DNA of 64,000 bases from Lepidodermella squamata (GCA_047495785.1 JBLDXI010000009.1:3906001-3970000), one strand, 5' to 3'. Shown: positions 6,740 to 39,829, counted from the first letter of the stretch. Notes: generated by a model not told the origin, from the sequence alone. A program made the numbers and translations.

Positions 6740-9700
6740 TCACCAATAAGCTGTGTCAGAGTTGAAGGGCATCGAGGGTGTTGTGAAAGCTAGAGCAGCA
6801 GTTGTTGTCGCGACCGGCGCCAGCATCCGCGCCCAGGGCGACTGGTCGGCCCGGTTCACCGGTTGGTTCGACATTCCTCTGTTATAATTTGCTGTCGAAT
6901 TAGCACTATTTGCGTTGGAAGACACTGGGTTGTAGCGAATCGAGTAGTTTTTGCCGTAGTTATTGTCCCAAAATTCACCTAAAATTAGCGAAAAATGAAA
7001 TAATAATATTAAAATTTTGGAGGACGTAAATCTTAGTATCCTGACTACCGCATTCGGTGCCAAACAATATGCCAATATTTATTCAGCCATTTTGTTGGGG
7101 AATTTACTACCCAAGTAGGGGTCGTACCACCGCTTCATCGAAATATCCCGATAATAAAGTCAGCTTTTTTGCAAATGGAGAGACCCCTTACCCCTCACCT
7201 GTGTCTGTGATTCCTGTGCCAATAAAATGAAACATTCAGCAAGAAAATCCGTCTATTAGACACCCATAGAGAACGTGGTGATCACTACGTTCTCTATGTG
7301 GACACCCTATCAGGAAAACGGACATACTCAGGCCTAACAAGGGCCCAGCCAGGCCTAACATGGGCCCATCTTAGGCCCAAGGGAAAAGGCCTACCATGGA
7401 CCCACCATGGGCTCACCGGGTTTTGACTGGGAACATGATGACCATACGAAGAAATGGCTGTTTCATCACCGCAAACTTGACACTACCGACAAGGCGATCT
7501 GGCCCATCGCCGAATGCTTGCACTGCGGTTCACTGGATTTACGCGGACTATTTTCCCAGTCGAACGCCGGTGACATAGGATAAAAATTTCTTAAACAAAA
7601 CTACACCCCCATCATTGCTGATACCTTGCCGTGGTTTGGTGGCTTTGTCTCGACGACCCGCAAGGCTGTGCCGATGGTTTAACCAAAGCGGAGAGGCCGA
7701 CGGGTAGATGCAGCAAACTAACATCAGTGACCCCCGTCCTCTGGGTTAGAGGTTGTGCGCTTTCCCAACAGGTCCCGTCACGTAAAAAAGCACCCGTTTT
7801 CGAAACCTCAACAAAGAAAAGCTATGTGCGAGGAGGCAGTCCGCCACGAAAGGGGACAACACTAACCTACTACGGCTGTTTTGGTACGTGACTTGTTTCG
7901 ATTTAAATTTCCGCTTTCCTCAAAGGGCGTGCAAAACCGACTGAAAAACTAATGTAGTATAATGATACTACCTCATACTACGACCTAGAAAACCTGATGG
8001 TCCGTCGCCCCCGAATCGAATGGCGCAAAAGATTGGCTAAAATCTTCGTTGCTTTGGTCGTAGGAGTAACCGTTGGTACAGTCGCCGTGTATGGCACTCT
8101 AGAATCCGTTAAACGCTCGATTTGCGGTTGATCGGCATTGGCTTTTTCGAGATGCGGAATCAACAAAGCGAGATTTGATGTGATGTTGCTGATCTTTCGC
8201 AGTCCTTTCTACGAAAGCTACGAAGGAGATAAAAGCGAGGTCGGAAGTCGGAAAGGCCGGTCCAACTGAAAACTACTAATTCTGCTAAAAAGCTGACAAA
8301 ACTGCCTCAAATTTGCCTCTATTCAGCCTGTGGCTATTTCGCCCCAATATCTCAAAAGAAATTGGAAAACCGACACTTTGTTCTTTTTGCATATATGGCG
8401 TAAATATTTCACGTAAAAGATAAACATTTGCTAACTTTAACGAGTCTTAATTTTGAGGTCAACACGCATTTTTCTAGGTTATCCGCTAATATACGGTGAC
8501 CTGCGTTTTTAATTGCGAAGAAATTACCGCACTCAAGCTTGTTATCTATAAGGCTTCATTTAAACAACTCAAAACGGGTATCTTTACCTTCTTTATCGGT
8601 ACATTTGTAGCAAATACAGAACTCGAGGAGAGAGCCAGGCGGCAGGTGAGGCGGAATCGGGATGAGAAATTCGAATAAATCATATTCAGACCGAACACCA
8701 TCTACCGGCATGCCCATCGGAAACGCGTCCGCCTTCCAATCGTTCTGCGTCCGCCAGCCGTCGTATGTCGCCCGAACGAAGACGTGTTTACCGAACGACA
8801 GATTTCTCACCCGAATAAGGCCTTTGATATTTCCAGATCGAAAATGCACGCTTTCGAGGGCGACGTTTTGAACGCGCAGTTTTTCAGCCAGTTGGATGTA
8901 ATTTGATAACGGGTCAGGGAATAGCACTTCGATGCAGTTGTTGCCCGGCCCACTGGCCGCCAGGCTTCGGTCGACGTTGCCCGGCATTTGTTGAACTAAA
9001 TTGAATATTCTAGCGATAGCTTGTGAAACAGGCGTATTCATCGGCGAATCGGCATAGCTGCCGATCGGAGTGGTCCCAAAGGTTCGAATGTCAATCTAAA
9101 AATTCGAAATGAATACCAATAAAAATAGGTTGTTTTGGTCTATTATCTCTGAGTTCCCAGATATATTAGCATCGACTTTGAACTGGATTTTTTGGCTTAA
9201 TAATTTTTTATTTCCCAGCTGAAGTTCAGAGAAGATAGTGATTAAAATCTAGAAAATCCTGAATTTCATTACTATAGCCACCAATTTTTTTATTTTCAGC
9301 AAAAAAAGTTCACGTGAATGATAATTTTTAATAAAATGAATGACCACGTGAAAAGCTGCGTTGACATTTTTTTAATAACAAAAATTAATAAAAACTTGAA
9401 TTAAATATAAATTTATATTAATAAAAAAATAAATCCTGCCTAACTTGAGGATAAAAAATTTGAGAAAAGTTTGGGAAATTTTCCGCAAATAAACTGGGTA
9501 AAAATGCAAAAAATTCGGAGAGTAAACCGGTTTGAAAATCAAATTTATAGCGACCTCGGTAAAAATCAGGAAAATTAACAGATTTTTTAATAATTTCGTA
9601 GGGTAGTATCCAGGCTCTAGAAAAGGTTGTTTATTCATTTTTAATTAAAAATTTACCAGAGATTGACCATCTGATTCGTCGGCGAACCTGACGTGCTTTT

Positions 9701-9953
9701 TACAACCAAAACTGAGGGCTCGTCTCATACCAGCTGGACTCGCTGGCGCTGGGGACGAAGGAATACTGGACCCTCTGCGTTCGCGAGGCTCAAAGTCGAT
9801 GCCATCGCTCGCAGCTGGCTGAAAATCTTCGTCTGCAATGAGGACAATTGTTTAAAAAGCCGGTAAAATAACGAAAGATTAAGACTCACCCCAAAGTGTG
9901 AAAGATCCAGCTGGATTTCTGTTATCCGGCATATTCAAATCATAATCTGACAT
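6740..9953 (-). CDS. PPP1R3: PP1 glycogen-targeting regulatory subunit (CBM21), array copy 1, ~328 aa
   Basis: Exons 9953-9890, 9832-9657, 9095-8588, 6978-6740. RVxF KKHVRFAD; GLIRVRNLSFGKHVFVRATYDGW; EFWDNNYGKNY; ends TAYW. Confidence 0.92.
7265..7298. mobile_element. 34-bp palindromic mini-element with an 8-bp target-site-like duplication
   Basis: CATAGAGAACGTGGTGATCACTACGTTCTCTATG is a palindrome with one mismatch, flanked by TAGACACC (7257-7264) and TGGACACC (7299-7306). Confidence 0.6.
7330..7573. repeat. MITE-like segment with short GGCC/CCCAT repeats and an imperfect inverted repeat
   Basis: GGCCTAACA.GGGCCCA occurs twice. TCACCGGGTTTTGACTGGGAACAT (7413-7436) is an imperfect inverted repeat of ATTTTCCCAGTCGAACGCCGGTGA (7550-7573). 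Confidence 0.4.
7624..7900 (+). mobile_element. 5' UTR fragment of an RTE-clade non-LTR retrotransposon
   Basis: CCTTGCCGTGGT...GACCCGCAAGGCTGTGCCG...TCCTCTGGGTTAGAGGTTGTGCG...CACGTAAAAAAGC...TTCGAAACCTCAAC resembles recalled RTE leader motifs. It is followed by FGT*LV, similar to the GTWNV start of the APE domain. Resemblance only. Confidence 0.5.
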
Positions 9954-12819
9954 GTGTTTGCTGATGAAGACTAGGCGTAAGAATTAGTAACCGCATGCAC
10001 CGGGTGATACAAAAATGCTATCAAAAATCGTCTGCTGATGATGGAAGTTTTTATTGCCTACAATTCATGGTAATATAAATAATATTATGTATAAGTAGTG
10101 TCTGAACACAGGCTATATTCAAGCACTTTTTTATACATCATAGTGAATCGTGTGCATATATAGAAGCCGCGGCGTAGTTGTGTGCGCATGCACGCTGGTG
10201 AAAAAATGTGCTTCTGGAAAAACACTATTATACTGTATACTGGCCAGAGTAAAAATCATTACAGCACACGTTTTTCCCGCACAGTACATATCGGCATGAT
10301 AGTTTTTTGCAGCCGCAACTCGTGACTTATTGTGATATCTCTAATACCTAGTTAACGAACTCGTTTCGGCCATAGTCGATTTCGCAGAGGTTATCCAGAT
10401 AAAAACAAACGCGCTACTCTGTATAATTATTACCCCTTTGATAACCTTATCAAGAGTATTTGCTTACATAATTTATCAGCTATATACTACTAATCCCATC
10501 GTCACGCCAGCCAACCATGCAAAAATAGAAAAAGCCGGTTGCCAGCCACGTGCTGCTAAAAATAACGATATAATATGGCGCATGTGAATAAAAGAAGAAG
10601 CCGAAGTTTTTTGTTTCAGCATCTCGGAAAATTGAATGGGGGACATCAGAGCGAGTGGTTCAAACACTTTTATTATAATTGCGATGTAGTGGTCGATAAT
10701 TCAATGTAAAGACTCTCGGGTTGAATACCGTTTCTCTATAAAAATTATGGCTAGGTATAGCTGGTTATAATTTAACCTAGAACCGAGACAATATTCGATT
10801 CCACTACCAATTGACAAAAAACGAAGGTAAAAAAGCCGCACAGCTTTGCTATTTTACCGCAGTGGGCTACCATCGTTGACAAATCTTAGTGGAAAAGGTT
10901 GACTCTTTTCAAGAGCGCAAGAGTCTGAGCCCTTTCACCTCTTTTGAATTGGTATTGAATGGGGACAAGAAGAGAGAAAAATGTTCGAGAATGCGAGTTT
11001 ATTACAGCTAGAAATGGAAATTATGGTGCTAGGTGGAAAATAGTCTAGAAAACGAGGATATATTGTGGTGTCAGCGCGCTGAATCTTGGCCGCACAAGGT
11101 CCTGCGCTATAATTTTGAAGATCGCGCGTTCGAAAAAACTGATATAAAAAAGCGGAGAATCGATCCAAATATTATTTGTCTCTTTTGTTTCCGCGAATCA
11201 ATTATTTATAACCTCGTTTTTCTCAATGAAAATTCACCAGCACAGATCCTCATGGGATTCGAAGTATTCAAACCTTCAAGCTATATGACAGAAGCCGGTA
11301 GACTGAACACAGAAGTTCAGAACCTTCTCACTCATGCAACAGCAAATTATACATGGGAATTTGCGTTAAAACGGCCCTTATAACACGGTAAACAATTAGA
11401 CCGGAATAATCGTAACCACATAGCGAATATTTCTGCATGCGTTGACAAAGCCAGTTCGGCAACTAAAGAGAACAAAATATTAGCTACGTAGTTAATTCCA
11501 GGATTTCGCATTGGATTTGGGAAAAGCAGCCGCGATGATTCATGGGCTGCTTCAAAGGATCAAGTTGCGGTTTAGCGTCCAATTAGTGTCAATTTCACTA
11601 ATTACCTTGGTTATGTAAATAAATATGTATCTCAAAGGCCGATGATTGTCAAATGAAAGACAATCCTGAAATCGGACAGCTCGAATTTTAGACAATTCGA
11701 CTTCAGACGCCTATCTTTCGGAAGTAAGCGTTATTCATGCAGATCGAACTGACAGCCTACCTTATTTTAATAATTACATTATTATATTTCAGCTCATATA
11801 TCTCACTTTCACAGCTTGAATAAAAAGGTGTGAGCGGAAAGAGTTGGCATCAAGTAAAGAAAAACGAAATGAAGTGGGTCGTTCTTGATATTTTCGGCAC
11901 AGAACTTTCAGGTTCGCGGGAGCTGCGATGACGTTTTAAAGCAGAAGATCAAGGGTCTGAAAACTCTGGAAAACATTTGCGAAGCCAATCCTTGAAGCAT
12001 TTAGTAAAGCTCCGAAAAATGTGACCTTTTCGGCGAACCTAAAACCATAAACTTTCCCCTTCTCGGAATCTTTTCTGGTGTTCGATGTTCGAATGAAAAG
12101 ATCCAACGAATTATGCTTACCTATTAATTACGCTTTCGGAAGGGACCGTCCGAATAATGAGTGATTCGTCATCGACGGCTCGGAACCGGCAGAGTTACAT
12201 GTGTAAATACGTCATCAAAACGTGCGGTTTTTTATCGCTTCACCGGTAATGAGGTGCAAGATTTTCCCAGGTTCCTTTTCTTTATCTCATGAAATCTACA
12301 CTTTTTACGAACCGTATCACAAGTCAGGCCATCTTCGTGTCGCCATGCAAACTTCTCTAGCCTAATGAGCAAATATTATTGTTTTCCGATAACCTCAATC
12401 TGGTGGACTTTGGAACGATTTGCTATGGAAAATTCTCGTGAGCTAGTTCCATCCGGAGCATTTGAAAGCTCCAGAAAAGCTTCAAATCTGCGTCTGGTTC
12501 CCAATTTTATTGGGTTTTTTATTTATTTACAGGTAAATTGGGAAAAAATTTCCTGGTTAGATCAAAATGTGCTCAAATCAACCTCTTTCTCGAATCACCA
12601 ATATCATGAAGATAGAAAAAAATTATAATTTTCGGTGAAAAATGGCGGTGTCAAACAATCGAAAATTCATGAAAAAAACTCGAACTACTGTTGAGTTGTC
12701 TCATAACTTTATTAGTAAAAAAATACCATACAACTGAACACTGAGTCCGTGTTTGAACACGAGGTAATACAATGATGAATCAAAATCAAAAGCAATCGCC
12801 GTATATCTATATAACGCGA

Positions 12820-14038
12820 TCACATATAATACGGAATTTCTACGCAATGATTAGCAGGTGAGCGGTTGTTGATATTGATGCTAACAGACGGCGTTACTAG
12901 ATGGCGGCGTTTCGTTGTGGCAACCACCGTTGTCGTACATAGCCGGTTCCACGTGGCGAATTCGGACCAAACCACAAGTGGGGCTTGGTATTTTCGCTCC
13001 TGAGGCTCGCCCTCTTCTTCGTCATCAAATTGCGAAACTTCGATCACTTTTGGCCGATAACGAAGCTTGTAATTATTTTTCTCGTTATTATCCCAATATT
13101 CACCTGGAAAAATTGGAAAAAAATTAATTAAAAACAAACAAATTAAAAATAGAAAAATTTAATTCAATTTAAAAATAAATTTAATTAAAAATAAAAATAA
13201 AATTAAAAATTTTACCTGGTTGATCCATGCATTGATAGCACGCGCAGAATTCAATTTGAGCACCCGGTTTGAGATGAGGCGGAATAGGTATACTGAACTG
13301 AAACAAATCGGTTTCTTTCGAGGCTAGCCGCGGCTTGGCGGGCCTGAAGTAATCAGCCTTCAGATCGACATGACTCGCCCAGTCGTCGAAGGTCAGCCGT
13401 ACGAAGACGTTTTTCGCGTATGACAAATTCCGCACACGAATCAGACCCTTGATATAGCCGCTTTTAATGTAGACACTCTCCAACGCGATGCTAGTCACCT
13501 TGAGTTTATCCGTGACTAATTTCGTGTAGTTGCTCAATCGATCGGGGAAAAGTAACTCGAAGCTGTTATCGGAATTTGCGTTGTGAGCTCGATGCTTTTC
13601 GTGGAACGTTTTCGTTGACCTCAATGGCTTTGACACCTTAACGAGATTTGTCAACATGTCGGAAATTGGCGAAGATTGGCCGCTATCGGCACTCCTTGCT
13701 TCAACTTCGTCATTGAGCGATAAATCGTAGTGGCGAACTAAGACTAGCGGCTTGCCATGGGCGTCGGCGAAGTGAACGTTCCGCTTGGGTGATTTTCCCA
13801 ACTCATCGCTATCGCTCGATTGATCGCTTACAACATCGAAATCGCCTTGCTCTTCAAGTGGCAAATCTATATAACAATTTTCATTAAAAAATGATTTATT
13901 TTTTAAACAAAATTTCAACTCACCCCAAAAGAAATATGACCTATTTTCAGTTTTGTATTCCGCCGGTAGAAGTAGTAGCGGTTCTAAAATTTCCGCATTC
14001 AGTTGTTCGGCTTGAATTTGCATTTTTAACGTAATCAT
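12820..14038 (-). CDS. PPP1R3: PP1 glycogen-targeting subunit (CBM21), array copy 2, ~349 aa
   Basis: Exons 14038-13924, 13866-13216, 13103-12820. KRNVHFAD; GLIRVRNLSYAKNVFVRLTFDDW; EYWDNN; WSEFATWN; ends IPYYM. Confidence 0.93.
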
Positions 14039-14335
14039 TAAAGATAAATTATATCGAATATAATCTAAATAGAAATAAAAATTCGAAAATATTATTATAT
14101 AACGTTGATGGTTAATGAGGAAAAGCGTGCTCTTGCGAATGTGCCTTAATACGCGTTTAGATAATGTGACAATGGGCTGTTATTGTTTATCTCTCGCGAA
14201 AAAACTTTTGGACACGCGCCCATGTCGTGCTGAATTTTTCATCATAGCTCTTAAAACTTAGAACCTCCCTTATCGCTGCTGTATAAGAAGGGAAAGAGGG
14301 AGAGGCTAAACTTCAATGAAACGTGATGATATGAC

Positions 14336-16336: not shown

Positions 16337-17639
16337 TCATGCGACTGATAGCCATTGTCTTGAGCTCATTGTGTTATCGCGGCTTTGTTGGTTGCAATTT
16401 GTCCCGAGATAGCTGGCAAAATTGCAGCGGCTCAGGTCGTTGAGTTCACCGCTTTTCGAGCTGATTTGTTGAGCATTAGTATCGACCAGCGCCATTTTAC
16501 AACTCGACTTGAGATCAGTTTTAGCGATAAATTGCGGCGCAGGATGGAATCGGATCGAATAGTTCGAGCCGTCGTTATTATCCCAAAATTCGCCTGTTAT
16601 TTTGGGGAGAAATTGAAAAAATATTAATCAGATTTTAGCCAGACTTTGTAAGATTTAATCAGACGCAACCATTTAATAGGGAGAAGCTTGGAAAATTCAG
16701 AAAGGATTCAGCTTCAGTGCTGAGAATTCAAGCGAATTTTTGTCAAGTTACACTCCAATTTAATTATTTTTTTATTATTTTTTTTGAATTTTAGCGGTAA
16801 AATCGAAACAAAATATATAATAATTATTTGTTGGAGAATTTATTTGAAAATTCAAGAAAGTCTGTTATAAATATTGGAAATACCTGCGACACCTGTGCAG
16901 CAAATGCAAAATTGAACGATAGTTCCTGGCATGAGATTTTTCGAAAATGGAACGCAAAATTCGAACGATTGGTAGCTTTCGTCACTTGGCCAATAATCAC
17001 TCAGCATCTCGGCTGATATATCGAAACACGAGTCCCAATCGTCGAACGACACTCGGGCAAAGACGTCTTTCGGGCTTGGCAAATTCCACACTAAGACGTG
17101 GCCAATCAGGTGATTTTCGATGAAGTTCAAGCTACGTAAAGCTACGTTTTGATTTTGGAGTTTGAATTTGAACAGAGCCATGTCGCGAAGCGGGTTCGGG
17201 AAAAGTAAGTCGACCGTATCGTGCACGGTGACATTTTCGGTCGATTTCGATTTCACAGTATCGGAGACAAACAGAAGAACCGAAGCCTGAAACATTTTCG
17301 AACTTCGAGAAACAATTCTTCGATTGGGGAAATTTTTTACCAAAGGTTTCCCAATACTATCGGCAAATCGGACTTGTTTTTTCTTGCTAGATCTCGAAGA
17401 TTGCTTAGCGGGGCTTGCTTGCTTGGGCAAAGGCGGAATAATGGCCATTTGGCGGGGGATTCTGATTGTCCCTATTGAGAAACGGACCTCAGCTTGTTCA
17501 GATTCTTCTTCTGGACCAAAAACGAACATTTCACATTATTAACACCGAATTATTAATGAAAATTACCGAAAATTGTGGGAAGTGATACGGCAGAATTTGC
17601 GGAAAATTCATTTGTGGTGTAATTTAATATTTCCGCCAT
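16337..17639 (-). CDS. PPP1R3: PP1 glycogen-targeting subunit (CBM21), array copy 3 (divergent), ~318 aa
   Basis: Exons 17639-17567, 17510-16884, 16593-16337. KKQVRFAD; GHVLVWNLPSPKDVFARVSFDDW; EFWDNNDGSNY; degenerate tail (CNFASY...QWLSVA*). Confidence 0.88.
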
Positions 17640-19223: not shown

Positions 19224-20455
19224 TCACCAGTAGGAGAATGAGACATCGATTCGGGCTGTGGCTGGCGATCGGTTGTTGAAAGAAGAATTTGTTTGGTAAT
19301 CGCCGCTGTTCCATGCCGCAAATTCTGACCAGATGAATTCACGCATTCGCTCGACTCGCTGGGCGTCCAAAGCTGCACTGATTTCGGGCAAATCGCCGCT
19401 ATTTTGCGACACTGGCGTAGCGGAGGCGGGCGCGTAGCGGAGTGAAAAATTTCGGCTCAAGTTGTTATCCCAGAAATCACCTTGAAAATAAAAAATCCCA
19501 TTTTTGATTAGGATCTTTTCGAACACCTTCACTTGAAACTTCAGTTGAGCTGTGAAATTGTTATTTTGATTTCCGTATTCCTGAATATTTGGATTATAAA
19601 TCAATTCAAAAATTAATTAATAATTTAAAGAATTGAATTTGGATTTGAATAAAAAATAATTGAATAAAATTTACAATTTCTATCCGGGCAGTGATAGCAC
19701 ACGCTGAAATCAGCCATAGTTCCGGGTTTGAGGTGGGGCGGAACTGGAATTTCAAAGTCGAAACTCTCGCTCTTTTCATCCCCAATTATCCGCCCGAGCT
19801 CTGGCTGGTGATAATGAGCCTGCCAGTCGTGCGACGACGCCCAGTTATCGAAGGTAATTCGAACGAAGACGTTTTTCTCGTACGACAAATTGCGCACCCT
19901 GATTGACCCAGTTATCGCATTTAACCGGCCGCAAACGCTTTCGAGGGCGATATTATTAGCATCGAGCCGTTCGGAAACCTGTTGAGCGCTGGGTTTCGCG
20001 AACAGCTTCTCAAAAGTTTCAGAGTTGTCAATGTTCGTGGGGGTAGGTTGACTCAAATTCTCCCGCTTATTTCTGCTGTCGAAGAAGTGATTGTGCCAGG
20101 ACGAGCGTAGCGCCTCAGCAGCGCCCGATAGCATTTGAGCAAGGGCGGATTTCACGTCATCGGGTTCGATTTGGTAAACCGTAGCTAGCGGCTTGCCGTT
20201 GTAGTCTGCGAAGGTGACGCTCTTCTTCGGCTTCAAAGGCTTATTATTATCATCGATGCTTTTCGATTTTACAAAAAACATCAAAGGCTCGCCGCACCCG
20301 TCGCGGCCGTCCAAGGTCGTATCTGGGATTTATAGAATTCGAATTCAATTTTTCCAATAATTTACTCGCAACTAACCCCACATGACCACATTTTGGTAGA
20401 AATACTCAGCTTTTGGATGGGAATAGTCATCTTCATGCTGCGATAGGTTGATCAT
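19224..20455 (-). CDS. PPP1R3: PP1 glycogen-targeting subunit (CBM21), array copy 4, ~327 aa
   Basis: Exons 20455-20377, 20322-19675, 19480-19224. KKSVTFAD; GSIRVRNLSYEKNVFVRITFDNW; DFWDNN; WSEFAAWN; ends FSYW. Confidence 0.93.
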
Positions 20456-21437: not shown

Positions 21438-22473
21438 TCACCAATAGCAGCAATTCATCTCAACGCGTAGGTCAGGAGTTGATTGGTGGCGGGTTATTTG
21501 ATTTGTTTGACAGCAGTCGCTGCTGTTTAGCGCTGAAAATTCAGACCAGATAATTTCACGAATTCTAGCCGCTCGTTCGGCATCTAATGCCTTGCTGATA
21601 GCTTCTGAAGATGACGAGTCGGCGGTTTTAACTGGGGCCGGCGTGCAATAGCCAGGCGAGTAACGAAGCGAATAGTTAGAGCTGCAGTTGTTATCCCAGA
21701 AATCACCTGGCAAAAAGAAAATTGAATAAATTTATCGAAAAAACCAGGATTTTTTAATTTACAATTTTTATCTGGGCAGTGATAGCAGACGCAGAAATTA
21801 GCCAAAGTTCCGGGTTTGAGGTGAGGCGGAACTGGAACTTCAAAGTCGAAGCTTTCCGAGGTATTGCTAGCAACTTCAGGCTGGTGATACTGAGCCTCCC
21901 AATCGTGCGATGACACCCAGTTGTCGAAGGTTATTCGAACGAAGACGTTTTTCTTGTACGACAAATTGCGCACCCTAATCGACCCAGTTATCGCATTTAG
22001 TCGGCCGCAAACGCTTTCAAGCGCGACGTTGTTCGCATCGAGGCGTTCAGAGACCTGCTGATCGCTCGGTGTCGAGAACAATCGCTCGAAAATTTCGTCG
22101 TCGTCATCGTCGTTTTGAGCCGGGGGTTTATCGCTTTGGTAGGTCGATCGCAGAGCTTCAGCGGCACTTGATAGCATTAGCGCCAGGGCTGATTTCGTCT
22201 CAGGCTCGATTTGATGAATCGTAGCCAGGGGCTTGCCGCTGTCGTCTGCGAAGCTGACTCGTTTTTTAGGTTTCGAGACTTTCTTGACGTTGTACGCCGA
22301 AGAGTCGCTGTCACATCGATCTCGGCAGTCGAAGTTGGTATCTATTAATAAATGTATTCATTTATCATCAAATTATTGAGCGTCTTATACTTACCCCATA
22401 GTACGAAATCTCGAGTGAATTCAACCTCGGAGAAGGTGAAATTTTCAAATTGTTGAGGCAACACGGATAGCAT
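21438..22473 (-). CDS. PPP1R3: PP1 glycogen-targeting subunit (CBM21), array copy 5, ~308 aa
   Basis: Exons 22473-22395, 22341-21763, 21706-21438. KKRVSFAD; CBM21 nearly identical to copy 4; WSEFSALN; ends CCYW. Confidence 0.93.
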
Positions 22474-23885: not shown

Positions 23886-24597
23886 ATGTAATTTCATTCG
23901 ATCATTTCAAAGAATATTAGGGTCGCTGAACGAAGTTCCACTGCTTCTCTGAAAATATATTTTCGCTCCAATCACCTTCGATTTAGATCTCAAACGATAG
24001 CTAATGAGGCGGAAAATCACGTGTTTAAAACGTCCAATCCTGAAAACTAAATCCATCACCTGGAAAGCCCAAGGTGTCCAAGGCCACTCTGTCCACATGG
24101 TAATTATCAGCCGAATTCGCAGCTTATCTAAATCGAATTTACTCGCATGAGCTTGCTTGCTATTTCGCTTCAAATTTTCCATCGCAAACAATCACTCAAA
24201 ATTATCTGCTAGATTTGAGAATTTAGACCAAAGATGATATTGAAGGGTTATGATTGACAACAAACAGCCCAGATGACAAATTTTAATTGACTGCAGTGGG
24301 ATTTTTATATAATTATAGCTCGCGGCACGTGCCTGCTTTAATTTCCATATTTTCCTTGGTTGGGGACAAAAAGGTAACTCTTATCATTTCCTCGATATCA
24401 AACAGTTTTATTTCAGCCTTTTCACTGAAAATAATGAAGCAATGTGTTTGATATCATGAATAATTATTAAAAAATGGCGGTAATAATACCATATTAAATA
24501 TCTCAGAGGTCAAGTGCCTCCGCACCACTAAGTGTCACGTTTTCTCAAAAGAATTCACTGAAGCAAGCTAGAGGAAGGGGGAATCTTCGGAGATTGG

Positions 24598-25798
24598 TCA
24601 CCAGTAGTAGGGTGTAGCACTGCGAGCAGCATTTATTGCCGGCGGCCGATTACTGCCGCCAGCCAACGGTGATGAACAATAGCTTCGCTGATCGTTCCAG
24701 GCCGCGAATTCAGACCAGATTAAGTTGCGTAATTGTTGAGCTTGTTCCGCATCTTGTGAAACCGCAAGCTCGTTCGAAGGTGAGGATCGGGGCGAAAATC
24801 GCAGCGAGTAATTATGACCGAAATTACTATCCCAAAATTCACCTGTGAAATAAAAAATAAATACGTCAAAATTCGATTTTTATGAAGAAAATAATTCCGA
24901 AATTTTTTGAAAATTTTGAATTTTGAAAGTTAAAATATAAGTTGAATTTTCAATTTTTAATGTCAATTCCCTCTTTAGAATAGTTCAGAAAAATTTTGAA
25001 AATTTTGAAATTTGAAATTTAATTTAAAATTCACTCTTTAGATTTTTTTTTCATGAATTTCAGTGAAACTTACAATTTTTATCCGGGCACTGATAGCACG
25101 CGCAGAGATCGACGATGGCGCCGGATTTCAAGTGAGGCGGAACGGGTATTTCGAACTCGAACAGTTCAGACTCGTCATCAGACGTTGCGAGGTAGGAGGC
25201 TTGCCAGTCACCATGCGAAGCCCATCCATCGAAAGTAATTCGAGCAAAGACATTTTTTACGAAAGATAAATTGCGCACCCTGATCAGGCCGCTAATCGAG
25301 TTCATCCGACCGGAAACGCTCTCCAAAGCGATGTTTTGCGATTGCAGCCTCTCTCCGACCACTTGCGAAGTCAAAGCCGGGAAGAGGCGTTCGAAAAGTT
25401 CTTCCCTTATCGACGACTTTCTTTCAATCGAAGTCGTGACACTGACGTATTGGCAGGTAGATTGCAGGGCTTGAGCGGCCGCTGATAGCATTACCGATAG
25501 AGGAGAGTGGGTTTCATTTTCGAAGTGGCGAATTGTGACGAGAGGCTGGCCGATCGTATCGGCGAAAGATACGGACTTCTTACGTTTAACCGGCTTCTTT
25601 TCAGTATTACTGTTAGAAGTTGTTAGAAGCGCATTTTCCAGATTACCGAAAATCGTTTCTAAGGTAAAAATTCGGAAAAATTAAGGGGTATCGAAATAAG
25701 GAATATTATAACTCACCCCAATAAATGTTTCGCCGGGTAAACTCGACATCAGGGAACTTAAACTCAGCGACTTCACGTTGAACAAGCGTAATCATCAT
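24598..25798 (-). CDS. PPP1R3: PP1 glycogen-targeting subunit (CBM21), array copy 6, ~303 aa
   Basis: Exons 25798-25717, 25658-25074, 24842-24598. KKSVSFAD; GLIRVRNLSFVKNVFARITFDGW; EFWDSN (variant of WDNN); WSEFAAWN; ends TPYYW. Confidence 0.92.
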
Positions 25799-28064: not shown

Positions 28065-29374
28065 TCACCAATAATAAGGAATTTGAATGCATGACGCCGA
28101 TTGCGAGCGGTTGCTGCTGTTCGCTAGCGGCGACTTTTGGGCAGTTTTTAGGCTGTGATTATCACTGGAGTTGCTGGAAGTGTTGGAAGTGCTGTTATTG
28201 CTGCTATTCCAAGATGCGAATTCGGACCACACAAAATCGCGGATTCGCTGAGCTCGTTCCGCGTCCAAAGCCTCGTTCGCAGCGGGTTTCGCGGCTGATT
28301 TTGGAAGATAACGAAGCGCAAAATTTTGACCAAAATTGTTGTCCCAAAATTCACCTGAAAATATTAATTTACAAATTTGAAAATTTGAATTTAAAAATGA
28401 AAAACCGCAAAATTGAAAAAATGAAACGAACATTTTCCAAAGTGAAAAACCAAAGTTGAACTTACAATTTAAATCTGGGCACTGATAGCAGACGCAGAAA
28501 TTGACCAGGCAGCCTGGTTTGAGGTTCAAGGGTAGCGGTATCGAGAATTCGAAAAGATCAGACTCGGATACGGAGATGAAAAAATTCGCCGGCCAGTCTC
28601 GCGAGGTGGCCCAGTTGTCGAAGGAGATTCGCACGAAGACGTTCTTCTCGAATGACAGATTCCGCACTCGAATGAGACCGTTCAGGCAATTGTCTCGCGA
28701 GTTCACGCTTTCAAGGGCGATGCTATTCGACAGCAGCTTGTCGATAACCAGCCGTGAGTAGCTGCCCATCGGATCGGGGAATAGCTGTTCGAAGCAATTT
28801 TGGCCCTGATTTAGGCCCGAATTCGTCGGAATAGCCGAATGGTCCAGGCTGTTGTACTGGCCGCTGGATCGGAAAACTTGAGCAATACTGGCGAGCATCT
28901 GCGAAAATGGCGACTTTTTCTCCGCTTCGCTGGCTTCGAAGTGGCGAACTGTGACGAGGGGCTGGCCGTGCGCGTCGGCGAATCGAACGCTTTTCTTGCT
29001 GTTCGAGCTGTTGTCGAGGCTATTCGATGAATCATCGTGGTCTGAGGAAGAATCGGAGGCGTTTGAGATTGTGCTTGCGGTGGACGTTTTACGGCCGAAA
29101 AATAACGGACCAGCATCTTCACTGTCGGATGAAAATCCTGAAACAATGAAAAAACTTCAAAATTCAAAATTCAATTTTGTTTGAACAAAAATTCAAATTT
29201 CGCCAAATTGTGCGGAAAAATAGGAAATAAATTCCAAAATAAATTTACGAAAATTTACCCAAAAAAATATAAAATAAAGATGAACTCACTTCTGGAGAAA
29301 TCCTGCTGATAGGTATCTTCGTTGTCCATCGCAAAATCGACGACAAAATTGTTGCTTGATATCGAGGGTAACAT
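28065..29374 (-). CDS. PPP1R3: PP1 glycogen-targeting subunit (CBM21), array copy 7, ~348 aa
   Basis: Exons 29374-29290, 29137-28466, 28354-28065. KKSVRFAD; GLIRVRNLSFEKNVFVRISFDNW; EFWDNN; WSEFASWN; ends IPYYW. Confidence 0.93.
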
Positions 29375-30108: not shown

Positions 30109-32384
30109 TTAGTAATGAGGACTCGATGCCGCGCCCATAGTAGCGTCTTCCGTGGCTCTTTTGTGCCAAGCAGCGAATTCGGACCAGACTATTTTTTCTC
30201 GGCTGCCTTGACTTTCGGAGCTTTGGCTTGCGTTTGACTTCAATACGGGGCTATCACTAGCATCGAGTTGGTCGTCAGAGTTCGGGGCGTGATACTGAAT
30301 CGAATAATTTTTGCCATCATTATTGTCCCAATATTCTCCTGAAAAATAGAGAAATTCAAAGAAAATAAAAAATGAACGTGAAAAAAGCTGGAATTATTTT
30401 TAAATAATTTGGATCATTTGCAAATGAGGAAAAAAAGGCCTCCATAAAATTAAAAAAAAATATGAATTATTCAAAATATTGGAAAAGATCGAATTGAGCA
30501 ACCCAAGTTTTGACCTACATATTTTGGGGTCCAGATGAATGGGATTTTTCCTAAATCGGTTTTATCTTCTAACTAACCTGGCTGCTCGCCATCGTTGCAT
30601 TTGTAACAAATCGCGAAACTAATCACAGCATTATCGTTAAGATGGGGCGGCGTAGGTACGAAAAACTCGAACAGGTCGTACTTGACCGGCGGATCCTTCC
30701 TAATAGCATCGCCACTGGCTATTGGCCCGGCGCCAAATTCTTCATCATCACTATCATCGTAGCCGTAAAACTCGCCATAGGCCGCAACTTCAACCAGCGG
30801 AAAGACATCGGCCGTCCAGTCGTGATTCGTCGCCCAGTTGTCGAAGGTCGTTCGAACGAAAACGCTTTTCGACGAGCAATTTTCGAACCTTCGCCCCCGA
30901 ATCATGCCCTTGATCGAGCCGCTGCGGCAGCAAACGCTCTCAAGCGCGACGCAGTTACGCTTCACTTTTTCCATCAACGCCGGGTAGTTGTTGAGAGGAT
31001 CCGGAAATAACGGGTCCAATGTGTCGCTTTTCGCGTCGGCAAGAGCGGAATTGTGGTGGAGCGAGGCCTGCTGGACTAGGTTGGTTAACTGCGAGAATTC
31101 CTCGCTCATATCCGGCGGTTCGTCCGGGTCGATTGGCGGGTCTTCGATCGCGACAACCGCAACGAGGGGCTGGCCGATTGCATCGGCGAAACTGACGTGT
31201 TTTTTGTACGATTTTTTAGGCGGGGATGAGGTGTCGCGGGATTCAGGTATACTGAAGGTGAGGGAGTCGTCGAGGTCGTTCGGCGAGCCGTAAGGTGAAG
31301 TACCTTCGCCGTCGCTTGAACTCGCCAAAATGACGATCTCATGACTTGCGGCGTGATAGGAAAATCCTAAAAAAAATAAGTATATTTGTATAGAATTTGT
31401 GTTTATTTTTAAAAAAATTTAAATTTAAATTTAAAGATAAATTGACCAAAAAGTGTCAGAATGGCTATTTTGCTATTTTGGCATAAATTTCCTAATTTTT
31501 ACTTCTAATAATTTTCTAAATGACCCAATAAGTACAAATTATCACCTTGCGAATCCAACTTCGTAAGTTCGAATGATAAAGTGCTGTAAAATTGGGAAAA
31601 AATGAACATTAACTCCTAAATTTTAAATTTGAATCCATCAATTTAAAAAACAGCCTGAATTATCGGGCAGCCCGAAATATCAGCCTCAGGTAGATTCGCC
31701 CGCAAAATGACTCAAAAATCGTAATAGATTTTATAGCGATATAAAAATCGGTGAAATTCACAATGATAAGAAGGATGAGCTCATGACCTCTAAAACCATT
31801 ATCCAAGAAAATAATTAAAATTTCTATTTTATGCGCATTAATAGGAGCTAAAATGATTATATAAATCCCGTATTAAAAATTTTACGCTGGACAAGGTAAA
31901 AAATCATCTCTTCGGAAATTCTCACTAAAACTGAAAAATAATCTGACCTAATTTAGGAAAAGTATTCTTGGCAAGGCTTAGGAAGTCGACTGAAAACTGG
32001 TCCGCCATCGACCGGATATTACTTGAATTGCCGCTTAGATCCGTATACTCCGGTCATTTTAATTAAAATTGAGTAAAAAATTACAAAATTACCATTATCT
32101 GAGGGCGAGGTAAAAGAGTCGTGGCCGAAGCCGCTGTCATTGTTAAAATAACTGCCATCAATCTTGTTGCGATGGCTGTCACCCGTCAATGGCGTTGACG
32201 ACTTGAAATGGCCATTAACAGCCGGCGGTGACCCGGCAATAGTCGTCGTAGTCGAAACACAGCCGTTACTGGTGCCTAAATACGACGTGCTAACTACGGC
32301 AGCAGCCGTTTTCAGCGAAACAGTTAGCAGCGCTTCGAAATTGTTCGTCAAACTTTGATTAGCCGTTGATACGGCTTCGTTCAT
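30109..32384 (-). CDS. PPP1R3: PP1 glycogen-targeting subunit (CBM21), array copy 8 (altered glycogen-binding motif), ~436 aa
   Basis: Exons 32384-32093, 31366-30578, 30338-30109. KKHVSFAD; GMIRGRRFENCSSKSVFVRTTFDNW; acidic insert; EYWDNNDGKNY; WSEFAAWH; ends SPHY. Confidence 0.9.
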
Positions 32385-35300
32385 TACGCCTCAATTTTCG
32401 ATAAAATTTGCTAAAACAGACAAAAAATATCAGAATGCCCTAGAAATAAATCACATCACTAGCGGAGGCTTTTTTGACATAATTCTATCACATACCCTCG
32501 TCGCCTCGTTTCGTCATACCTCTTTCCATTGAGAGGTAGCGGTAATTTTTCTTCTAGATATTGAATAAAATGAAAACGACTGATAAAGAGCTCCGTTTTC
32601 CTCTCTAGTTGGTTTTTTATCGAGTGTATATGTCTCTTGCTGCTCCATATCGCTGAATCCGTTTTTGTCTGTTATCAGCAATAGTCATAATAGTAATAAT
32701 AATAAGGGCCGCTTTTTTGCGAGTGAGGCTGCAAACAACCTCTACTGGCGCTAGAGTGACTACAAAAAAAATAGTAATAATATGAATTTACAACTATCCT
32801 CAGTTTTTTTTTCTTTTGCTGATATAATTCTATGTAGGCCGTGTCTGAAATTGGCACAAACGCAATAGTTTCTGCTGATTGCAAGCGCCGTAATTTGATA
32901 GAAGAAAACCTTACGCAATATTGCGCGTTGTAGCCAATCATGCTTGAAAAAAATTGGCATCGAATTTATACCTAGTTATTCGAGTCTGATATAAATGAAT
33001 AAATCAACCAGGAAATGCCGGTGTGTTACCCTATGCACTCCGGACTAATCGGGACATAAAATAGGTTGGATGAGCAAAAGCGGGGGATCATAGGCAAGAA
33101 GTGTTGTCACCCTGCCAATAGTAATTTGGAGTACAATGGTTATTTTAGAATAATAATGGAATTAGCTAAAGCGCCAAAAATTTGAATTTTGAACTTTTAA
33201 TGCGTGATTTTAGGGTGTTCGATGCGTGAACGCCGCGTTCGGGTCAAAGGGCAGTGGTCAGCTCGATTGTTTTGGGGTCAGGGTTCAGCGACCTTTGCTC
33301 TGCTGCTCCTCTCATTAACGTTTAAAAATCGCCAGGTGGCGCGGTTCGTGTCTGGGCACATTGCTAGCAGCGCTATTCTTGAATTGTGTTCCTGTTACTT
33401 CCGGTCCGGTCTTCGCATAGGCTGCTGTTCAAAAATAATTCATTTCAAAGGGTTCAGGAAAATCAGGGTCTGTCATTTTGTCTCCATCATAACTGAGTAA
33501 TGAGTTGGCCACAAAGGTAAAATTATGCTGGATTTCAGTCTCAAACAAAAATCTCTGTTTGAGAATAAAGATTTGTCTTAAATAGATCAACTTGAAGACT
33601 GATTCGGCATGGACGAATCAACATTCGGAAATTGTTTTGAGGACCTCCATCTATTTTTCGGCATTGGAAACCTTGAAACCGGATTCCGAGGATTTGAAAT
33701 TTATCGCATGATCTCTATTTGAAGTTTTCAGCTTCTAACAATCTGATGCAGAGATTAAAACTTTCATGCTCAAGTGCGAAGCCTCGAAAGAATGGAAGCC
33801 TTTCATAAAACAAAGTGGTATACTTTGAATGGTGTTGACTTCAGCCAAAATCCAAAATCGAAGTTCTCAAGGTGAAAATCTTCATGAAATGAGTGAGATA
33901 TAACGTTGGATGCCTAGCCTAGCTGCATGGTTGAATAGGGAAAGCTGGATAGAGGTCATCTGTTCCAAAATTACGCAAATGAACTAAAATTTTAATCACC
34001 TGGTTCGTTTGGCAGTACTTTTCCGAACTTTTCCCGTAGTTCATAACTTTCCCATGGTTCGAACTTCCCCCTGGTCACCTTGTCGTATTTCTGCAAACCA
34101 TTACAAATTTTGACACGAAATCAGGTCTTAATCTGAAATAGGAAGTGCTACGGTCAGATTCTAGGCAGTTTGAGAATAGGGGTTACTCCAGTGTTGGAAA
34201 CAGGAATAAGCAGCTGGGAGGTATTACAGACACAAATCGAACCTCTGAACGTTAAAATGGACCGCTGAAGAACGTCCGGTTTTAAAACGACTTCTTTTTC
34301 AAAATCGCATGAAAATAGCGAAAAACATGATACCAAGCGCATAAAATTGCTTTACTTAGCTAAAAATCAGATCATTCTATGTTATAGGAGAGCCCTGTGA
34401 GACCCACGAGGCCTTTCGGTCAGGGTCAGCAAAATAGTTCGGAAGCTGTGGACGACCCCACCACTCCGATATACGTTTACAAAACATTGCACTGCCGCAC
34501 TAAGGCTCACAGTTTAGCAAAATGAGCAAAACGGTAAAATTAGTTATTCCTTGGTTTTCTCCATTATTTCCTATGCTAAATCGAATATTCAACTTTTCCC
34601 GGTCCTCCGATGACACCTTTTGAGACCGATACCGGATCTGAAACGGGGACGGATCTGGATCGACCGGACCTGTTTCTAACGCTGGGTGAAGTCCTACATT
34701 AAGGCAAGCTTGAATCTATAATAGCTTGGTAAAAATAACTTTTCCTCAAACAGTTGAAAATTCGAATAGATATTTACTGACCTCGCACACCCTGTATGTC
34801 CTCTGAACTCTGAACTGGACCTCTAAATGCGATGGTTTTCTGTCCTCTAGTAGCAACTAACGACATTTTCGGTAATTGTAGGCTATTACTATCGAAAAAG
34901 TCTTCGGGTTCTTGACCGAAAGCTTCTACGAAATTGAGCAGGATTGAATACCTTGAATCGATTGAGCCATGAATAATTACCATCAGATGAAAAGTTGTAC
35001 ATCAATTCCAAGCTGCTCAAAAATCAAATCCGCACATTTTTCTTTTAGGATATCTTCAAACTGAAGCAGACGAGCCTCACCACAGCCTTCAGCTCATGTC
35101 GACAAAAAACAGCCAGGTGCCGGTGACCTAGTCACTGCACCCGTATAAAAAAAGTGTAACGACGCCGTCAGCCATTTAAAGCGACATTTCTCCAGTTTGA
35201 TAGCATGGCTCAAGCGCAATAGAAAAACAGGTAGATAGGTTACCTGTTGAGGTAGTACCTGCCTATAGCTGTGTCGTAAACAAATAACCCACGTTTAGAA

Positions 35301-37461
35301 TCGCCTAATGCGTATCAACTCGGTGAAAAAATAGGTTGAACCTGGTGAACCTTACGACTTGAAAAATATGCTAATCACGAATGCACCCGATTGTCGCCCA
35401 TGTAAACAACCGCTCACGTGATTTGCGGTATAAGATGGCTTTTTCGAAAACAGAAATTGTTATATTTTACTGCATTTTGTTTTTGAAATTCTGCGTGCCA
35501 CTCGATTCAGAGATAGGTAATTTATTAACATCCCCTAGGCACCGGTGATGTAAAAATATGATAATAAAGCTCAAAGGTTGACTCCTGTTGAAAATATGCG
35601 ATGAACCAGGGTGAGTTTATACGCCTCTTCACCGCCGGCTGGTTCCGTTTTGTTTACATACCTCTGTTCCGCTCTTGATAGAGAACATCGGGGTTACTGC
35701 GCAGGGAACAATAAAAAATTCCTACCTGGATCGCAAAACATTGCGTGAGTTATCAGCATTTCTCATTGATAAACGAAGCAGTAAAAAAACCTGGCGCATG
35801 AGAAAAAAAACATCGACCTTTGACCTTTAACCGAAATTGCCCGGTAACTACCACAACACGCACCATGATTTGATAAAAAAAAAACTTTGAAACAATGGCC
35901 TTTCATTTTGCATGCGCTTTCATCGCTAATAATAACCCAATTCAGGACAATATTCTTCCATGGCCAAGAATAAAAAAAGACACGATGAATCTTCAAAATT
36001 TCTTTATTCCTTTTTCAACACTTTTGAGGCCCGTGATGAAGGAACAATTTATTATTTTTCCGCTGCTTTCTTTGTCGTCGAAAAAATCACGACTCGACGC
36101 ACATATGATGCCACAATTCGAAAATTGAACAAAAGACACAGACCTGTTTGCAGTGAAGGTAATCATCGTCAACATGATCATTTCGCAATTTATAAACACT
36201 AAACCGCCGATTTTTCAACCAATCGGCCGGCAATTCATTCAACATTCTACATCATACAATATAAATATTTGAGGAAAGATTCGGTTGAAATTTCTGTTTC
36301 ACGGCTGTAAATAATGTAGCTTCGATGTGACAAATAACAAATCGCGGAAAACGAGGCGATTTTCAAATTTTTTTAGGAACCTCAACCACGTCCATAAAAC
36401 AAAAAATCAGGTAAACTCGAGCTGGCTCGTGGGTACAAAACGTCTTATAACCACGATACTATATCATCATTATTATTATTATAAATCAAAAGTATATTAT
36501 TAAATGCAAGTTGAGCTGATGTTGCGAGAAGTTGAAGTACAAAAAAGAACGCGTAAATAATATATTTGATAATAATAATAATTTGAAATAATATAGCAGT
36601 AAAAGGCATAATTCGAGAAACGAGCCAAATCAAGTTCGCCTGGGTGGTTTTAGACATTTTTCAACAAAAAGAATCGAAACTATAATATTATCAGCCTTGA
36701 GGAAGTCACGCAACGGGAAAATCGAAATTTTGGTACATATGTAAAAAGACGATATATTTCCTTTTTAAGGTCCGAAACGTGGACGAAAAACAGAAAACGA
36801 GTTGATTTGTTGAAGGACATTGGGAGTGAAATAATAACTTTGCAATAATAATATAATATAAAGAAATTTTCTAAATATATTTACAGTCATAATATATTTG
36901 AAGTAGACAGAGTTTACGAGAAGAGAGCAATTGGTATAAAAAAGCCGTGTTTTTCCGAATTTAAGGTGGCTGAAACCAGTAGTAATAAGGCGTGCAATTG
37001 ATAACATACTATTTTCTCAAAAAATATACATATAACAATTTTTTATGCAGGTAGGGGTTGGGCGGTGCAATTGAAACACCGCAAAATTGCGAACAGCCGC
37101 TCGAAATGGCAAGACGAAAAACCGAACAAATAAAAGAGGAAAAGAACCGAGCGATTTTCAAAGGTCTGCTTTCTTGTTTTAATATGAGCCGGATTTTCTT
37201 TGTATACAAATCATTCGTGATAGACGACGGAGCAGCAGGATTTTTCACATTTTTTCGGTAATAAATTTTTTCAAGTTTTTTCCCATGATGTACAAGTGTA
37301 TGTAACCAAGTGATGAGCCATTTTTTATCATAAATTCGAAGACACAAAATTCTCGCCAGCCTTCTGCGGGTTTGCGTACGTTCTGCTACGTTCATTTATA
37401 TATATCACACGAACCGCGACGAGAGACAGCGATAGAAAGCACGAGGGCGACCAATAACAGC

Positions 37462-39829
37462 CTACCAGTACGGCACGTCTTGACCAGCCGGTGACGTTGT
37501 AGTCGCCGATTGCTGAACAACAGCCGAAACGCGGGCAGCCGTCGCGATAGGCACCGATCGATTCGCGGCCACTAGAGCGGATCCGCCGTTCCAGGACGCG
37601 AATTCCGACCAGACAAACTCGCGAATCCGCTGCGCCCGCTCGGCCTCCAACTCGGCGGCGGTTCGCGTGGTTGGCGGCAGTAGCTTCTGATGGGTTGTAT
37701 TGCCGTTACTCGACGGCTGTTGTTGACTGGTTTGACACGAGGGCAGTTGATTTTGCTGTTGTTGGGTTACGCAACTTGTCGCGACGCGTCGCTGGTAAGA
37801 TAAATAGCTATTGAGAGGGCGATAGCGGAGCGAATAGTTTTGCCCGTCATTGTTGTCCCAATATTCACCTATAAATATTATAACAATTAATATTTTAAAA
37901 ATTCATGGCAATTCGAATTTTTTAAAATAATCAAAAAATTTAAAAAATATTAAAATTTTAATTTTAATTTTTTCAATTTTTTAAATCGATTTTTTAAAGA
38001 AAATTAATTTTCTAATAAACTAACCGGATTGGTCTCCGCACTGGTAGCATATACAGAAGTCGACGATTGTACCCGGCATAAGATTTGGCGGGATAGGCAC
38101 CGAAAATTCGAACAGGTCAAAGTCTGTCCGGCCGTCGCACGGCGCCACGATCGGAAAATACTCGGCCGCGTGGTCGTGCGATGTCGCCCAGTGGTCGAAG
38201 GTGGCGCGAACGTACACCTTCTTGTGGTAGGACAAGTTGCGCACTCGAATCATGCCCTTGATGTAGCCGGCTCGGCAGCACACGCTCTCGAGCGCGATGT
38301 TGCGATGCCTAAGCCGTTCGCTCAGCTTCGTATAGCTGGTTAGCGGGTCGGGGAATAGCAGCTCCATGCAGTCTGAGTCGAGGCTGGACGCGCACAGCTG
38401 AGCGGCGGCAGTTGGCGCTTGGACTAGATTGAAAATTCGCGATAGGGTAGTCGCAACCGGCGTATTATTTGCACTATCGTAACTGCCAACCGGTGAATTC
38501 GCGATCGTACATACAACAGCCTGAAATTATAAATTGAAATCATATATTTTTTTATTTTTCGCAATTTATAAGGAGGAATTTATAAATTTTAAAACTCCTC
38601 CTTAAAATTTAGGATTTTAGTGCACCGAATTTCTTTTTCACTCTGAAGTGCGCATTTCTTATGACGTAGCAGCCTATTCTACCATGTGATTAAGGTAGCC
38701 CCGGTATCACGTGTTTTCCTAGACTGTTAAGACGCGTCTGAAAATCGGTATGTTCTGAATAACTATTTATTTTCTCACTCATTTTCCCTTCTCAGGACAT
38801 TTTATACGTTCAAGACGCGTTATAGTATAACATTTTACAGCAGCAGCACGTGATCTAAAATTGCCTCTGCCTGCTATAATAATAGTATTACATTTCGCGA
38901 GGGCTACTACGCAGCTGATGAAAATAATGAATGCGCCGCGAAGAAAAATCGATTTTTACATTCGATTATTAGGTGCCTAGACAACTTACCAACGGCTTCC
39001 CGTGAGCATCGGCGAAGCGGACGCGTTTTTTACTGGCGCTGCCGTATTGATCTGCGTTGTACGACGTCATAAACTGGCACGCCGACAACGAAGCTGTCGA
39101 CGACATTGACAGCGGCGAGGATACGGAAGATACTGTCGAGCAGTAAGAGTAGGAAGCAGAGGAGCATGACGAGTAAGCCGACGATGAAGTGAGTTGCGAG
39201 CTGTCTGAACACGGCACCGAAGAATTCAGCACAACTCCTTCGTCACTGGGGCTCGTCGGCTCATCACTGGGAGGGCTTATCAAATCTGGAAAAATATTTA
39301 AAAAAATTAAGCACAAAATTCACGAAAATTTTCGAACAAAATTGATCGATTTTCTTGGGAAATTTTATTTCTTTTTAAAGTTTATTTTAAATTCAATTAA
39401 TTTTTATACTTCAATCCATAAGAACCACCTGTTGATCTTGCAATTCAATCAAATAAGTATTTGCTTACCCCATTCGGTTATTAGGTCGAGTTCATCGGTA
39501 GTTATTGATATCGCTTTATCGGAATTTGGATCGCCGTCACATCCCGATAACTTCTGAGGGGAGGAAGACACGAAGCGGCGATGAAGATGGTGCAAATGCT
39601 GCTGGTGGCCTAACATAAGGCCATTCAGAGTCATAGTTGCTTCTTCCATGTCGACATAGTCGGCTTGCGAGTCGCCGTTGCCATTTGTCGACACAACAGC
39701 CGCCTGCAATGAAGCAGCCAGTAGAGATTCAAAGTTTATAGGCAACGATGATGAATTCGAATTCGCGTTGAAATCTCGATGTCTAGGCGAAATTATCGCC
39801 ATCGAGTCTCGGCTATTTATCGGTAGCAT
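37462..39829 (-). CDS. PPP1R3: PP1 glycogen-targeting subunit (CBM21), array copy 9, longest and most canonical, ~519 aa
   Basis: Exons 39829-39469, 39285-38990, 38520-38025, 37868-37462. KKRVRFAD; GMIRVRNLSYHKKVYVRATFDHW; EYWDNNDGQNY; WSEFASWN; ends VPYW. Confidence 0.94.

Follow-up and report, generated by a model that had tools for sequence, protein, structure and literature searches.

Nine predicted PPP1R3-type glycogen-targeting subunits of protein phosphatase 1 form an old tandem array in Lepidodermella squamata

We analysed a 64,000-nt stretch of contig C9 of the Lepidodermella squamata genome (GCA_047495785.1 JBLDXI010000009.1:3906001-3970000; hereafter the window), from an animal assembly of 121 Mb in 151 contigs with short introns. 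Nine genes encoding a CBM21 domain, G1 to G9, lie head-to-tail on the minus strand of the window over ~33 kb, from position 6740 (the final base of the G1 stop codon) to position 39829 (the A of the G9 ATG), in the order G9, G8, G7, G6, G5, G4, G3, G2, G1, followed by a gene for aminopeptidase P (Table 1). The original prediction had described them as nine intact same-strand paralogues of the PPP1R3 family of protein phosphatase 1 (PP1) glycogen-targeting subunits, each with an open spliced frame, and enumeration of the GT-AG pairs that keep the frame open indeed yielded nine complete models of 297-519 aa with zero internal stops and GT-AG ends at 20/20 introns. RNA splice support extends to G4, G5 and G6, and the 5' exons of G1, G2 and G5-G9 as well as the start of G3 are models. 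The domain and motifs predicted for each copy were all recovered: CBM_21 (PF03370) scores 41.3-78.9 bits in every one of the nine (gathering score 28.9), with additional weak matches to the final CBM21 strand in the last-exon pieces of G1 and G2, and a regular-expression search in six frames found, within 6.9-39.0 kb of the minus strand, exactly nine instances of [RK]x[VI]xF[AS][DE] and nine of [FYW]WD[NS]N, with every gene carrying a single copy of each. The former motif sits 100-170 residues N-terminal to the CBM21 core, and its only two plus-strand matches are in stop-broken frames. Nineteen columns are invariant in the nine-copy alignment, and the divergent G3 keeps 19/19. Shared phase-1 introns had also been noted; one of them, directly before (E/D)(F/Y)WD(N/S)N, is common to all nine genes, and the other, after a conserved Trp closing a short exon 1 (W-D or W-E across the junction), is found in six, the first introns of G7 and G8 being plausible and of the same phase with less certain junctions, and G3 having none as modelled. 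An additional phase-0 intron after the RVxF region is common to G1 and G9. When the Pfam scan was extended to the 121-Mb assembly, as had been proposed, it returned 11 CBM_21 matches, the two outside the array being on contig C1 (G10) and contig C25 (very divergent). Because nine of the genome's only 11 matches fall here, the clustering is not due to chance.

The assignment to the PPP1R3 family was borne out by comparison with known proteins. A profile of the nine copies matched only four sequences in the PDB, all of them PPP1R3C, PPP1R3B or PPP1R3A (E 2.9e-25 to 6.4e-21), the best being the PP1-bound PPP1R3C structure 7qm2_B (E 2.9e-25), in an alignment that extends from KKRVVFAD across CBM21, and the others PPP1R3B (2eef, E 2.4e-22), PPP1R3C (7qf7) and PPP1R3A (2m83). 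Against 1.84 billion representatives, HMMER returned 2,840 matches, only 7 of them below 1e-30, and the nearest named ones were a bryozoan (Watersipora) 'PPP1R3B-like' protein, cephalopod proteins and fish PPP1R3. A word-indexed protein search with a G2 exon returned no match, and one with an alignment query returned 6, too few to count the family members of relatives. In the PPP1R3 family, RVxF and WDNN(D/E) have been defined experimentally as the PP1-docking and substrate-binding motifs, respectively, and mammals possess seven PP1 glycogen-targeting subunits (PMC4482762). Judged by domain and motif content, G1-G9 are predicted PPP1R3-type PP1 glycogen-targeting subunits; they are new members of a known family and not a new kind of system. 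With PPP1R3B (GL) they share a length of ~300 aa, an N-terminal RVxF motif, a CBM21 domain closing in WD(S/N)N (WDSN of G6 resembles WDSNR of GL) and, in eight of the nine copies, an aromatic C-terminal tail end, but GL is one gene and not nine clustered paralogues, and the array tails end in W (PYW or PYYW) instead of the YY of the named fish PPP1R3B (WPSY.GYE...PYY). PPP1R3C (PTG/R5) is the best solved-structure match, its WDNND is identical in G3, G8 and G9, and fish PPP1R3C tails read WQSWG...PYW; on the other hand, the N-terminal regions of PPP1R3C and PPP1R3D (R6) are unrelated to those of the array, five of whose nine copies lack the acidic fifth residue. In our tree the array is not orthologous to any single vertebrate PPP1R3 subfamily. 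Outside vertebrates, Drosophila Gbs-70E and Gbs-76A and yeast Gac1, Pig1, Pig2 and Gip2 combine RVxF with CBM21 in the same presumed role and form small paralogue sets with divided roles, of two to four dispersed genes, whereas L. squamata has ten close paralogues and one distant one, with nine in a single 33-kb array. Known gene families commonly expand in tandem. Still, a literature search found no paper on an array of this sort, as the original prediction had suspected, and none linking rotifers with PPP1R3.

Two public runs, X1 and X2, contain the stretch, and we placed both on window positions 19200-25199. Since X2 covers 30/30 bins and has no splice-like GT-AG (CT..AC) joints, it is DNA; the independent DNA run contains 0.70-0.91 of the sampled words in the stretches tested. 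By contrast, X1 behaves as RNA, because it is confined to gene bodies (no coverage between genes, in bins 20600-21200 and 22400-23800), because its joints, which read CT..AC on the plus strand and GT..AG in gene orientation, fall exactly at four predicted introns of G4-G6, and because it carries a poly(A) end. Specifically, X1 contigs skip 54 and 194 nt in G4, which confirms both introns (a 94-nt skip is an alternative acceptor), confirm the 56-nt intron of G5 and skip 24841-25071 in G6 (231 nt, CT..AC on the plus strand), and a poly(T) loose end at 24387 marks the poly(A) site of G6. Thus, transcription of G4, G5 and G6 and their modelled splicing are both confirmed. For the region of G2 and G3 (12700-17600), the fraction of sampled words present in X1 was 0.30, compared to expectations of ~0.36 for transcription of both genes and ~0.18 for transcription of just one; the same calculation calibrated on the first stretch gave 0.40 against an observed 0.39. 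This aggregate word fraction suggests that G2 and G3 are probably both transcribed. The possibility raised at the outset that most copies are unexpressed is therefore answered in part, with spliced RNA from three copies and a probable signal from two more, the RNA comparison having covered the stretches of G2-G6.

Comparison with a near-identical second DNA sample provided a measure of selection in G4 and G5, based on 40 of the 95 single-base differences. The coding differences were 10 synonymous and 1 non-synonymous in G4, and 11 synonymous and 1 non-synonymous in G5 (21:2 in total), the only two coding indels (6 and 3 nt, both in G4) keep the frame, and indels that are not multiples of three occur only in introns or untranslated regions within 19200-25199. 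G4 and G5 are under purifying selection. Between paralogues, where amino-acid identity is 25-60%, synonymous sites are at or close to saturation (dS, the synonymous divergence, of 1.5 or higher), and the ratio of non-synonymous to synonymous divergence (dN/dS) is 0.17-0.27 where estimable, not near 1, which had been named as the value that would speak against functional copies. No intergenic similarity was found within the array, and DNA repeats are confined to conserved coding motifs. The array is old and reflects neither a recent burst nor an assembly duplication; an artefact, already considered improbable in the original prediction, is largely refuted because the copies are so divergent and because the independent DNA run covers the stretches tested. 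Superimposed on this divergence is a mosaic between G4 and G5, whose third-position identity is 0.8-0.9 in the CBM21 core (approximately codons 121-225 of their alignment; window 19675-20322 and 21763-22341) and 0.27-0.4 in the N- and C-terminal parts, compared to an even 0.4-0.6 throughout between G5 and its sister G10. The core tract probably arose by gene conversion between these adjacent array members.

The history of the array was examined with a distant relative, represented by partial metagenome contigs that overlap into one locus, in which the order is R1, R2, aminopeptidase P (convergent with R2) and R3. The relative's aminopeptidase exons (on L015) are 57-77% identical to those of the window gene (71% for the query exon), whose own convergent position next to G1 makes it the synteny anchor. 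R1 has the long first exon, all three intron positions and the tail of G9, including the extra phase-0 intron of G1 and G9; R2 and R3 are 79% identical, and G8 is the best window match of both. The R2/R3 pair includes a young duplicate. No further CBM21 gene was found in the 9 kb upstream of R1, and seven window genes occupy the place where the relative's syntenic locus has none. A maximum-likelihood tree of the G copies, the relative's R copies and other animal and metagenome sequences placed all G and R sequences together with two further metagenome proteins in one clade (100/99), separate from the other animal sequences. Within it, G9 pairs with R1 (100/95), which identifies the two as predicted orthologues, the inner clade G2,(G7,(G6,(G4,(G5,G10)))) (99/94) is sister to G9+R1 (90/54), and G1, G3 and G8 are deep branches, that of G3 being the longest. 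On this topology the founding duplication of the inner clade predates the split from the relative, in which inner-clade genes have either been lost or lie at another place. The most recent branchings (G4, G5, G10) may postdate the species split. G10, with the same two phase-1 introns and a GC-AG last intron, is a dispersed copy of G5. Hence, the lineage-specific expansion proposed in the original prediction is supported in part, in that the array holds 9/11 of the genome's family and the relative's locus two genes and a young duplicate; the expansion is not recent, and 'lineage-specific' is meant with respect to this one partial metagenomic relative.

How such subunits would act can be outlined from their motifs. 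The N-terminal [KR]x[VI]xF-AD peptide would dock the PP1 catalytic subunit, CBM21 would hold the complex on glycogen, and the WD(N/S)N surface at the CBM21 end would recruit glycogen synthase and phosphorylase. Mammalian GL binds phosphorylase a at its very C-terminal end, and a Y284F substitution there abolishes inhibition (PMC3292316). The conserved array tail, WSEF.xWN ... PY[YW], would be the counterpart of this end, through which phosphorylase a allosterically inhibits GL, and presumably its homologue. An aromatic tail end is present in 8/9 copies (YW in six, of which G6 and G7 end in PYYW, PYYM in G2 and PHY in G8) and an upstream WSEF(A/S)xW-type motif in 7/9, and among the best 149 family matches 96 end likewise in YW (73) or YY (23), typically as F(A/S)xW-x8-PY(W/Y), including salmonid PPP1R3B, fish PPP1R3C and whitefly, ostracod and nematode proteins. 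The copies differ at several sites that bear on regulation: the middle residue of RVxF is phosphorylatable in four of them (Ser in G5, G6 and G8, Thr in G4), the other five having Arg or His, and the basic-basic-x-Ser context of KKRVSF in G5 resembles RRVSF of GM and possibly forms a PKA-type site; an acidic residue at the fifth WDNN position is confined to G2, G3, G8 and G9; the tail, kept by seven or eight copies, is missing from G3; and the N-terminal exons are unrelated between copies, except for NFE(A/S)LL..SL, which is common to G8, G9 and R1. Because the copies vary where mammalian subunits differ in regulation, the most economical reason for the retention of nine copies would be that they divide regulatory tasks among themselves.

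The account that we favour, and judge to be quite probable, is that the nine genes are functional PPP1R3B/C/D-type paralogues that arose long ago by serial tandem duplication of an ancestral pair next to aminopeptidase P, that they have been kept by purifying selection, and that the copies divide labour. We infer the subfunctionalisation, the binding activities and the role of the tail. Several points weigh against this account. The relative is known from partial contigs, and its copy count covers that locus only; the selection counts come from the 40 of 95 differences in only G4 and G5; and expression evidence is direct for G4-G6 and consists of one aggregate number for G2 and G3. Moreover, the distance from WSEF to the C-terminal end is 25-54 residues in the array clade compared to ~14 in typical members, so that the longer tail may not share the function it has in GL, and parts of the tail are missing from G3 (the entire tail) and G1 (the WSEF half). 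A bolder version, possible but doubtful, is that the array constitutes a regulatory toolkit in which each scaffold has its own input (kinase phosphorylation of an RVSF-type docking site in some copies, sensing of phosphorylase a by the tail in most though not all, or a different substrate surface) and is used in its own tissue or phase of life, such as a feeding phase as opposed to a dormant or stress-resistant one.

Alternatively, several copies, above all G3 and the inner-clade members G4-G7, in which the acidic residue of WDNN(D/E) has been lost, may have acquired new functions, docking PP1 but targeting it to other substrates or no longer responding to phosphorylase a. In support of neofunctionalisation, G3 sits on a very long branch, is tailless and carries VLVWNLP in place of IRVRNLS, and Y, L, C, F and F occupy the fifth WDNN position in G1 and G4-G7, respectively; the motif's acidic residues are important to substrate binding in PTG and R6 (PMC4482762). 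In addition, mammalian PPP1R3G is reported to act also on RIPK1, a role outside glycogen (PMC8642546). Conversely, GL (WDSNR) and GM (WSNNN) are bona fide glycogen subunits despite lacking the fifth acidic residue (PMC4482762), all nine copies retain CBM21 above threshold and the 19 invariant core columns, and seven or eight retain the family-wide tail. We regard neofunctionalisation as unlikely. It is also quite improbable that the copies are redundant and kept because more PPP1R3 protein is useful: their tandem, same-strand arrangement and the conversion-like tract homogenising the G4/G5 CBM21 core would fit such dosage amplification, but arrays of this kind are normally young and near-identical, whereas here the copies are strongly diverged with saturated synonymous sites, unrelated N-terminal exons and differing motifs, and no intergenic similarity remains. 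Finally, that the copies are mostly unexpressed relics or collapsed or expanded repeats is largely refuted and hardly credible, since all nine spliced frames have stayed open while synonymous sites diverged to saturation, three copies have RNA splice evidence, G4 and G5 show the 21:2 excess of synonymous differences, the independent DNA run holds most of the sampled words and the copies are too divergent for assembly duplicates, even though expression data cover five copies at most, the last intron of G1 spans 1.6 kb, and the G3 start is modelled, as is the first intron of both G7 and G8.

Table 1. Positions, gene models and distinguishing motifs of the CBM21 genes and of other features in the window (window coordinates unless a contig is named)
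Feature	Location	Strand	Length and exons	Motifs and remarks
G9	37462..39829	-	519 aa, 4 exons: 39829-39469, 39285-38990, 38520-38025, 37868-37462	long N-terminal exon with NFESLL..SL; KRVRF; WDNND; tail WSEFASWN...VPYW
G8	30109..32384	-	436 aa, 3 exons: 32384-32093, 31366-30578, 30338-30109	first intron 726 nt, model only; KHVSF; CBM21 with acidic insert; WDNND; tail WSEFAAWH...SPHY
G7	28065..29374	-	348 aa, 3 exons: 29374-29290, 29137-28466, 28354-28065	exon 1 model only; KSVRF; WDNNF; tail WSEFASWN...IPYYW
G6	24387..25798	-	303 aa, 3 exons: 25798-25717, 25658-25074, 24842-24598	3' untranslated region to poly(A) site 24387; KSVSF; WDSNF; tail WSEFAAWN...TPYYW
G5	21438..22473	-	308 aa, 3 exons: 22473-22395, 22341-21763, 21706-21438	KKRVSF; WDNNC; tail WSEFSALN...CCYW
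G4	19224..20455	-	327 aa, 3 exons: 20455-20377, 20322-19675, 19480-19224	KSVTF; WDNNL; tail WSEFAAWN...FSYW
G3	16337..17529	-	297 aa, 2 exons as modelled: 17529-16893, 16593-16337	most divergent; CBM_21 47.9 bits; KQVRF; VLVWNLP replaces IRVRNLS; WDNND; no WSEF, no aromatic C-terminal end
G2	12820..14038	-	349 aa, 3 exons: 14038-13924, 13866-13216, 13103-12820	RNVHF; WDNNE; tail WSEFATWN...IPYYM
G1	6740..9953	-	328 aa, 4 exons: 9953-9890, 9832-9657, 9095-8588, 6978-6740	last intron 1609 nt; KHVRF; WDNNY; tail without WSEF, ends TAYW
Xaa-Pro aminopeptidase (aminopeptidase P)	4217..6387	+		Pfam Creatinase_N_2 and Peptidase_M24; flanks the array, convergent with G1; synteny anchor
G10	contig C1:4626371-4626640 (L004 1036-2192)	-	297 aa, intact	sister of G5, 63% identical
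Eleventh CBM21 gene	contig C25:1367709-1367999 (L011 1291-1812)	-		34 bits; RWDNH for WDNN; tail ..SSEFYW
Glutathione S-transferase-like	43385-43675	-		
Glutathione S-transferase-like	62696-63049	+		
Glutathione S-transferase-like	63568-63891	+		
Open reading frame	61302-61895	+		weak match (34 bits), neurotransmitter-gated ion-channel ligand-binding domain

Elsewhere in the window, the gap between G8 and G9 (32400-37460, ~5 kb) and the last intron of G1 (6979-8587, 1.6 kb) hold short open reading frames only and may be degraded insertions; the frame at 37009-37395 in the G8-G9 region had no match in a Pfam scan. The other half of the window contains three glutathione S-transferase-like exons or genes, two with a Pfam GST_C_3 match and a third judged by eye, and an open reading frame weakly resembling an ion-channel domain. 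As to the presumed partner, the only long open frame for the PP1 catalytic subunit in this genome is incomplete at its ends and continues across an in-frame intron.

We also considered whether long proteins with several CBM21 domains represent fused models of PPP1R3 arrays elsewhere. The proteins concerned were P0117, in which CBM21 occurs four times, and the cephalopod P0002 and P0006, in which it occurs twice; we rejected the idea, as they lack RVxF-FAD and are single long open reading frames. An uninterrupted frame of 1,859 aa with four CBM21 domains and no RVxF lies at L023 9920-17851 (ENA ERZ25072076, ctg245267), followed within 2.3 kb by two small CBM21 open reading frames, a different, multi-CBM21 architecture. 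The metagenome neighbours of P0004 and P0008 were single CBM21 genes and no arrays. In the predicted protein P0096 (1,024 aa), from the set of representatives, CBM21 is joined to PYRIN, FISNA, NACHT and LRR, a fish-type NLR architecture; the junction may be genuine or may stem from two genes merged in one model.

The array leaves the understanding of how the PPP1R3 family works unchanged. As PP1 specificity comes from regulatory subunits, the number and diversity of glycogen-targeting subunits set how finely glycogen storage can be tuned, and if the toolkit reading were true, a microscopic invertebrate would have finer glycogen control than that afforded by the seven dispersed genes of mammals. 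Ten close paralogues, nine of them arrayed, old, intact and constrained, amount to a natural experiment in scaffold diversification, and the array offers a compact target for work on energy storage in an invertebrate lineage that has received little attention.

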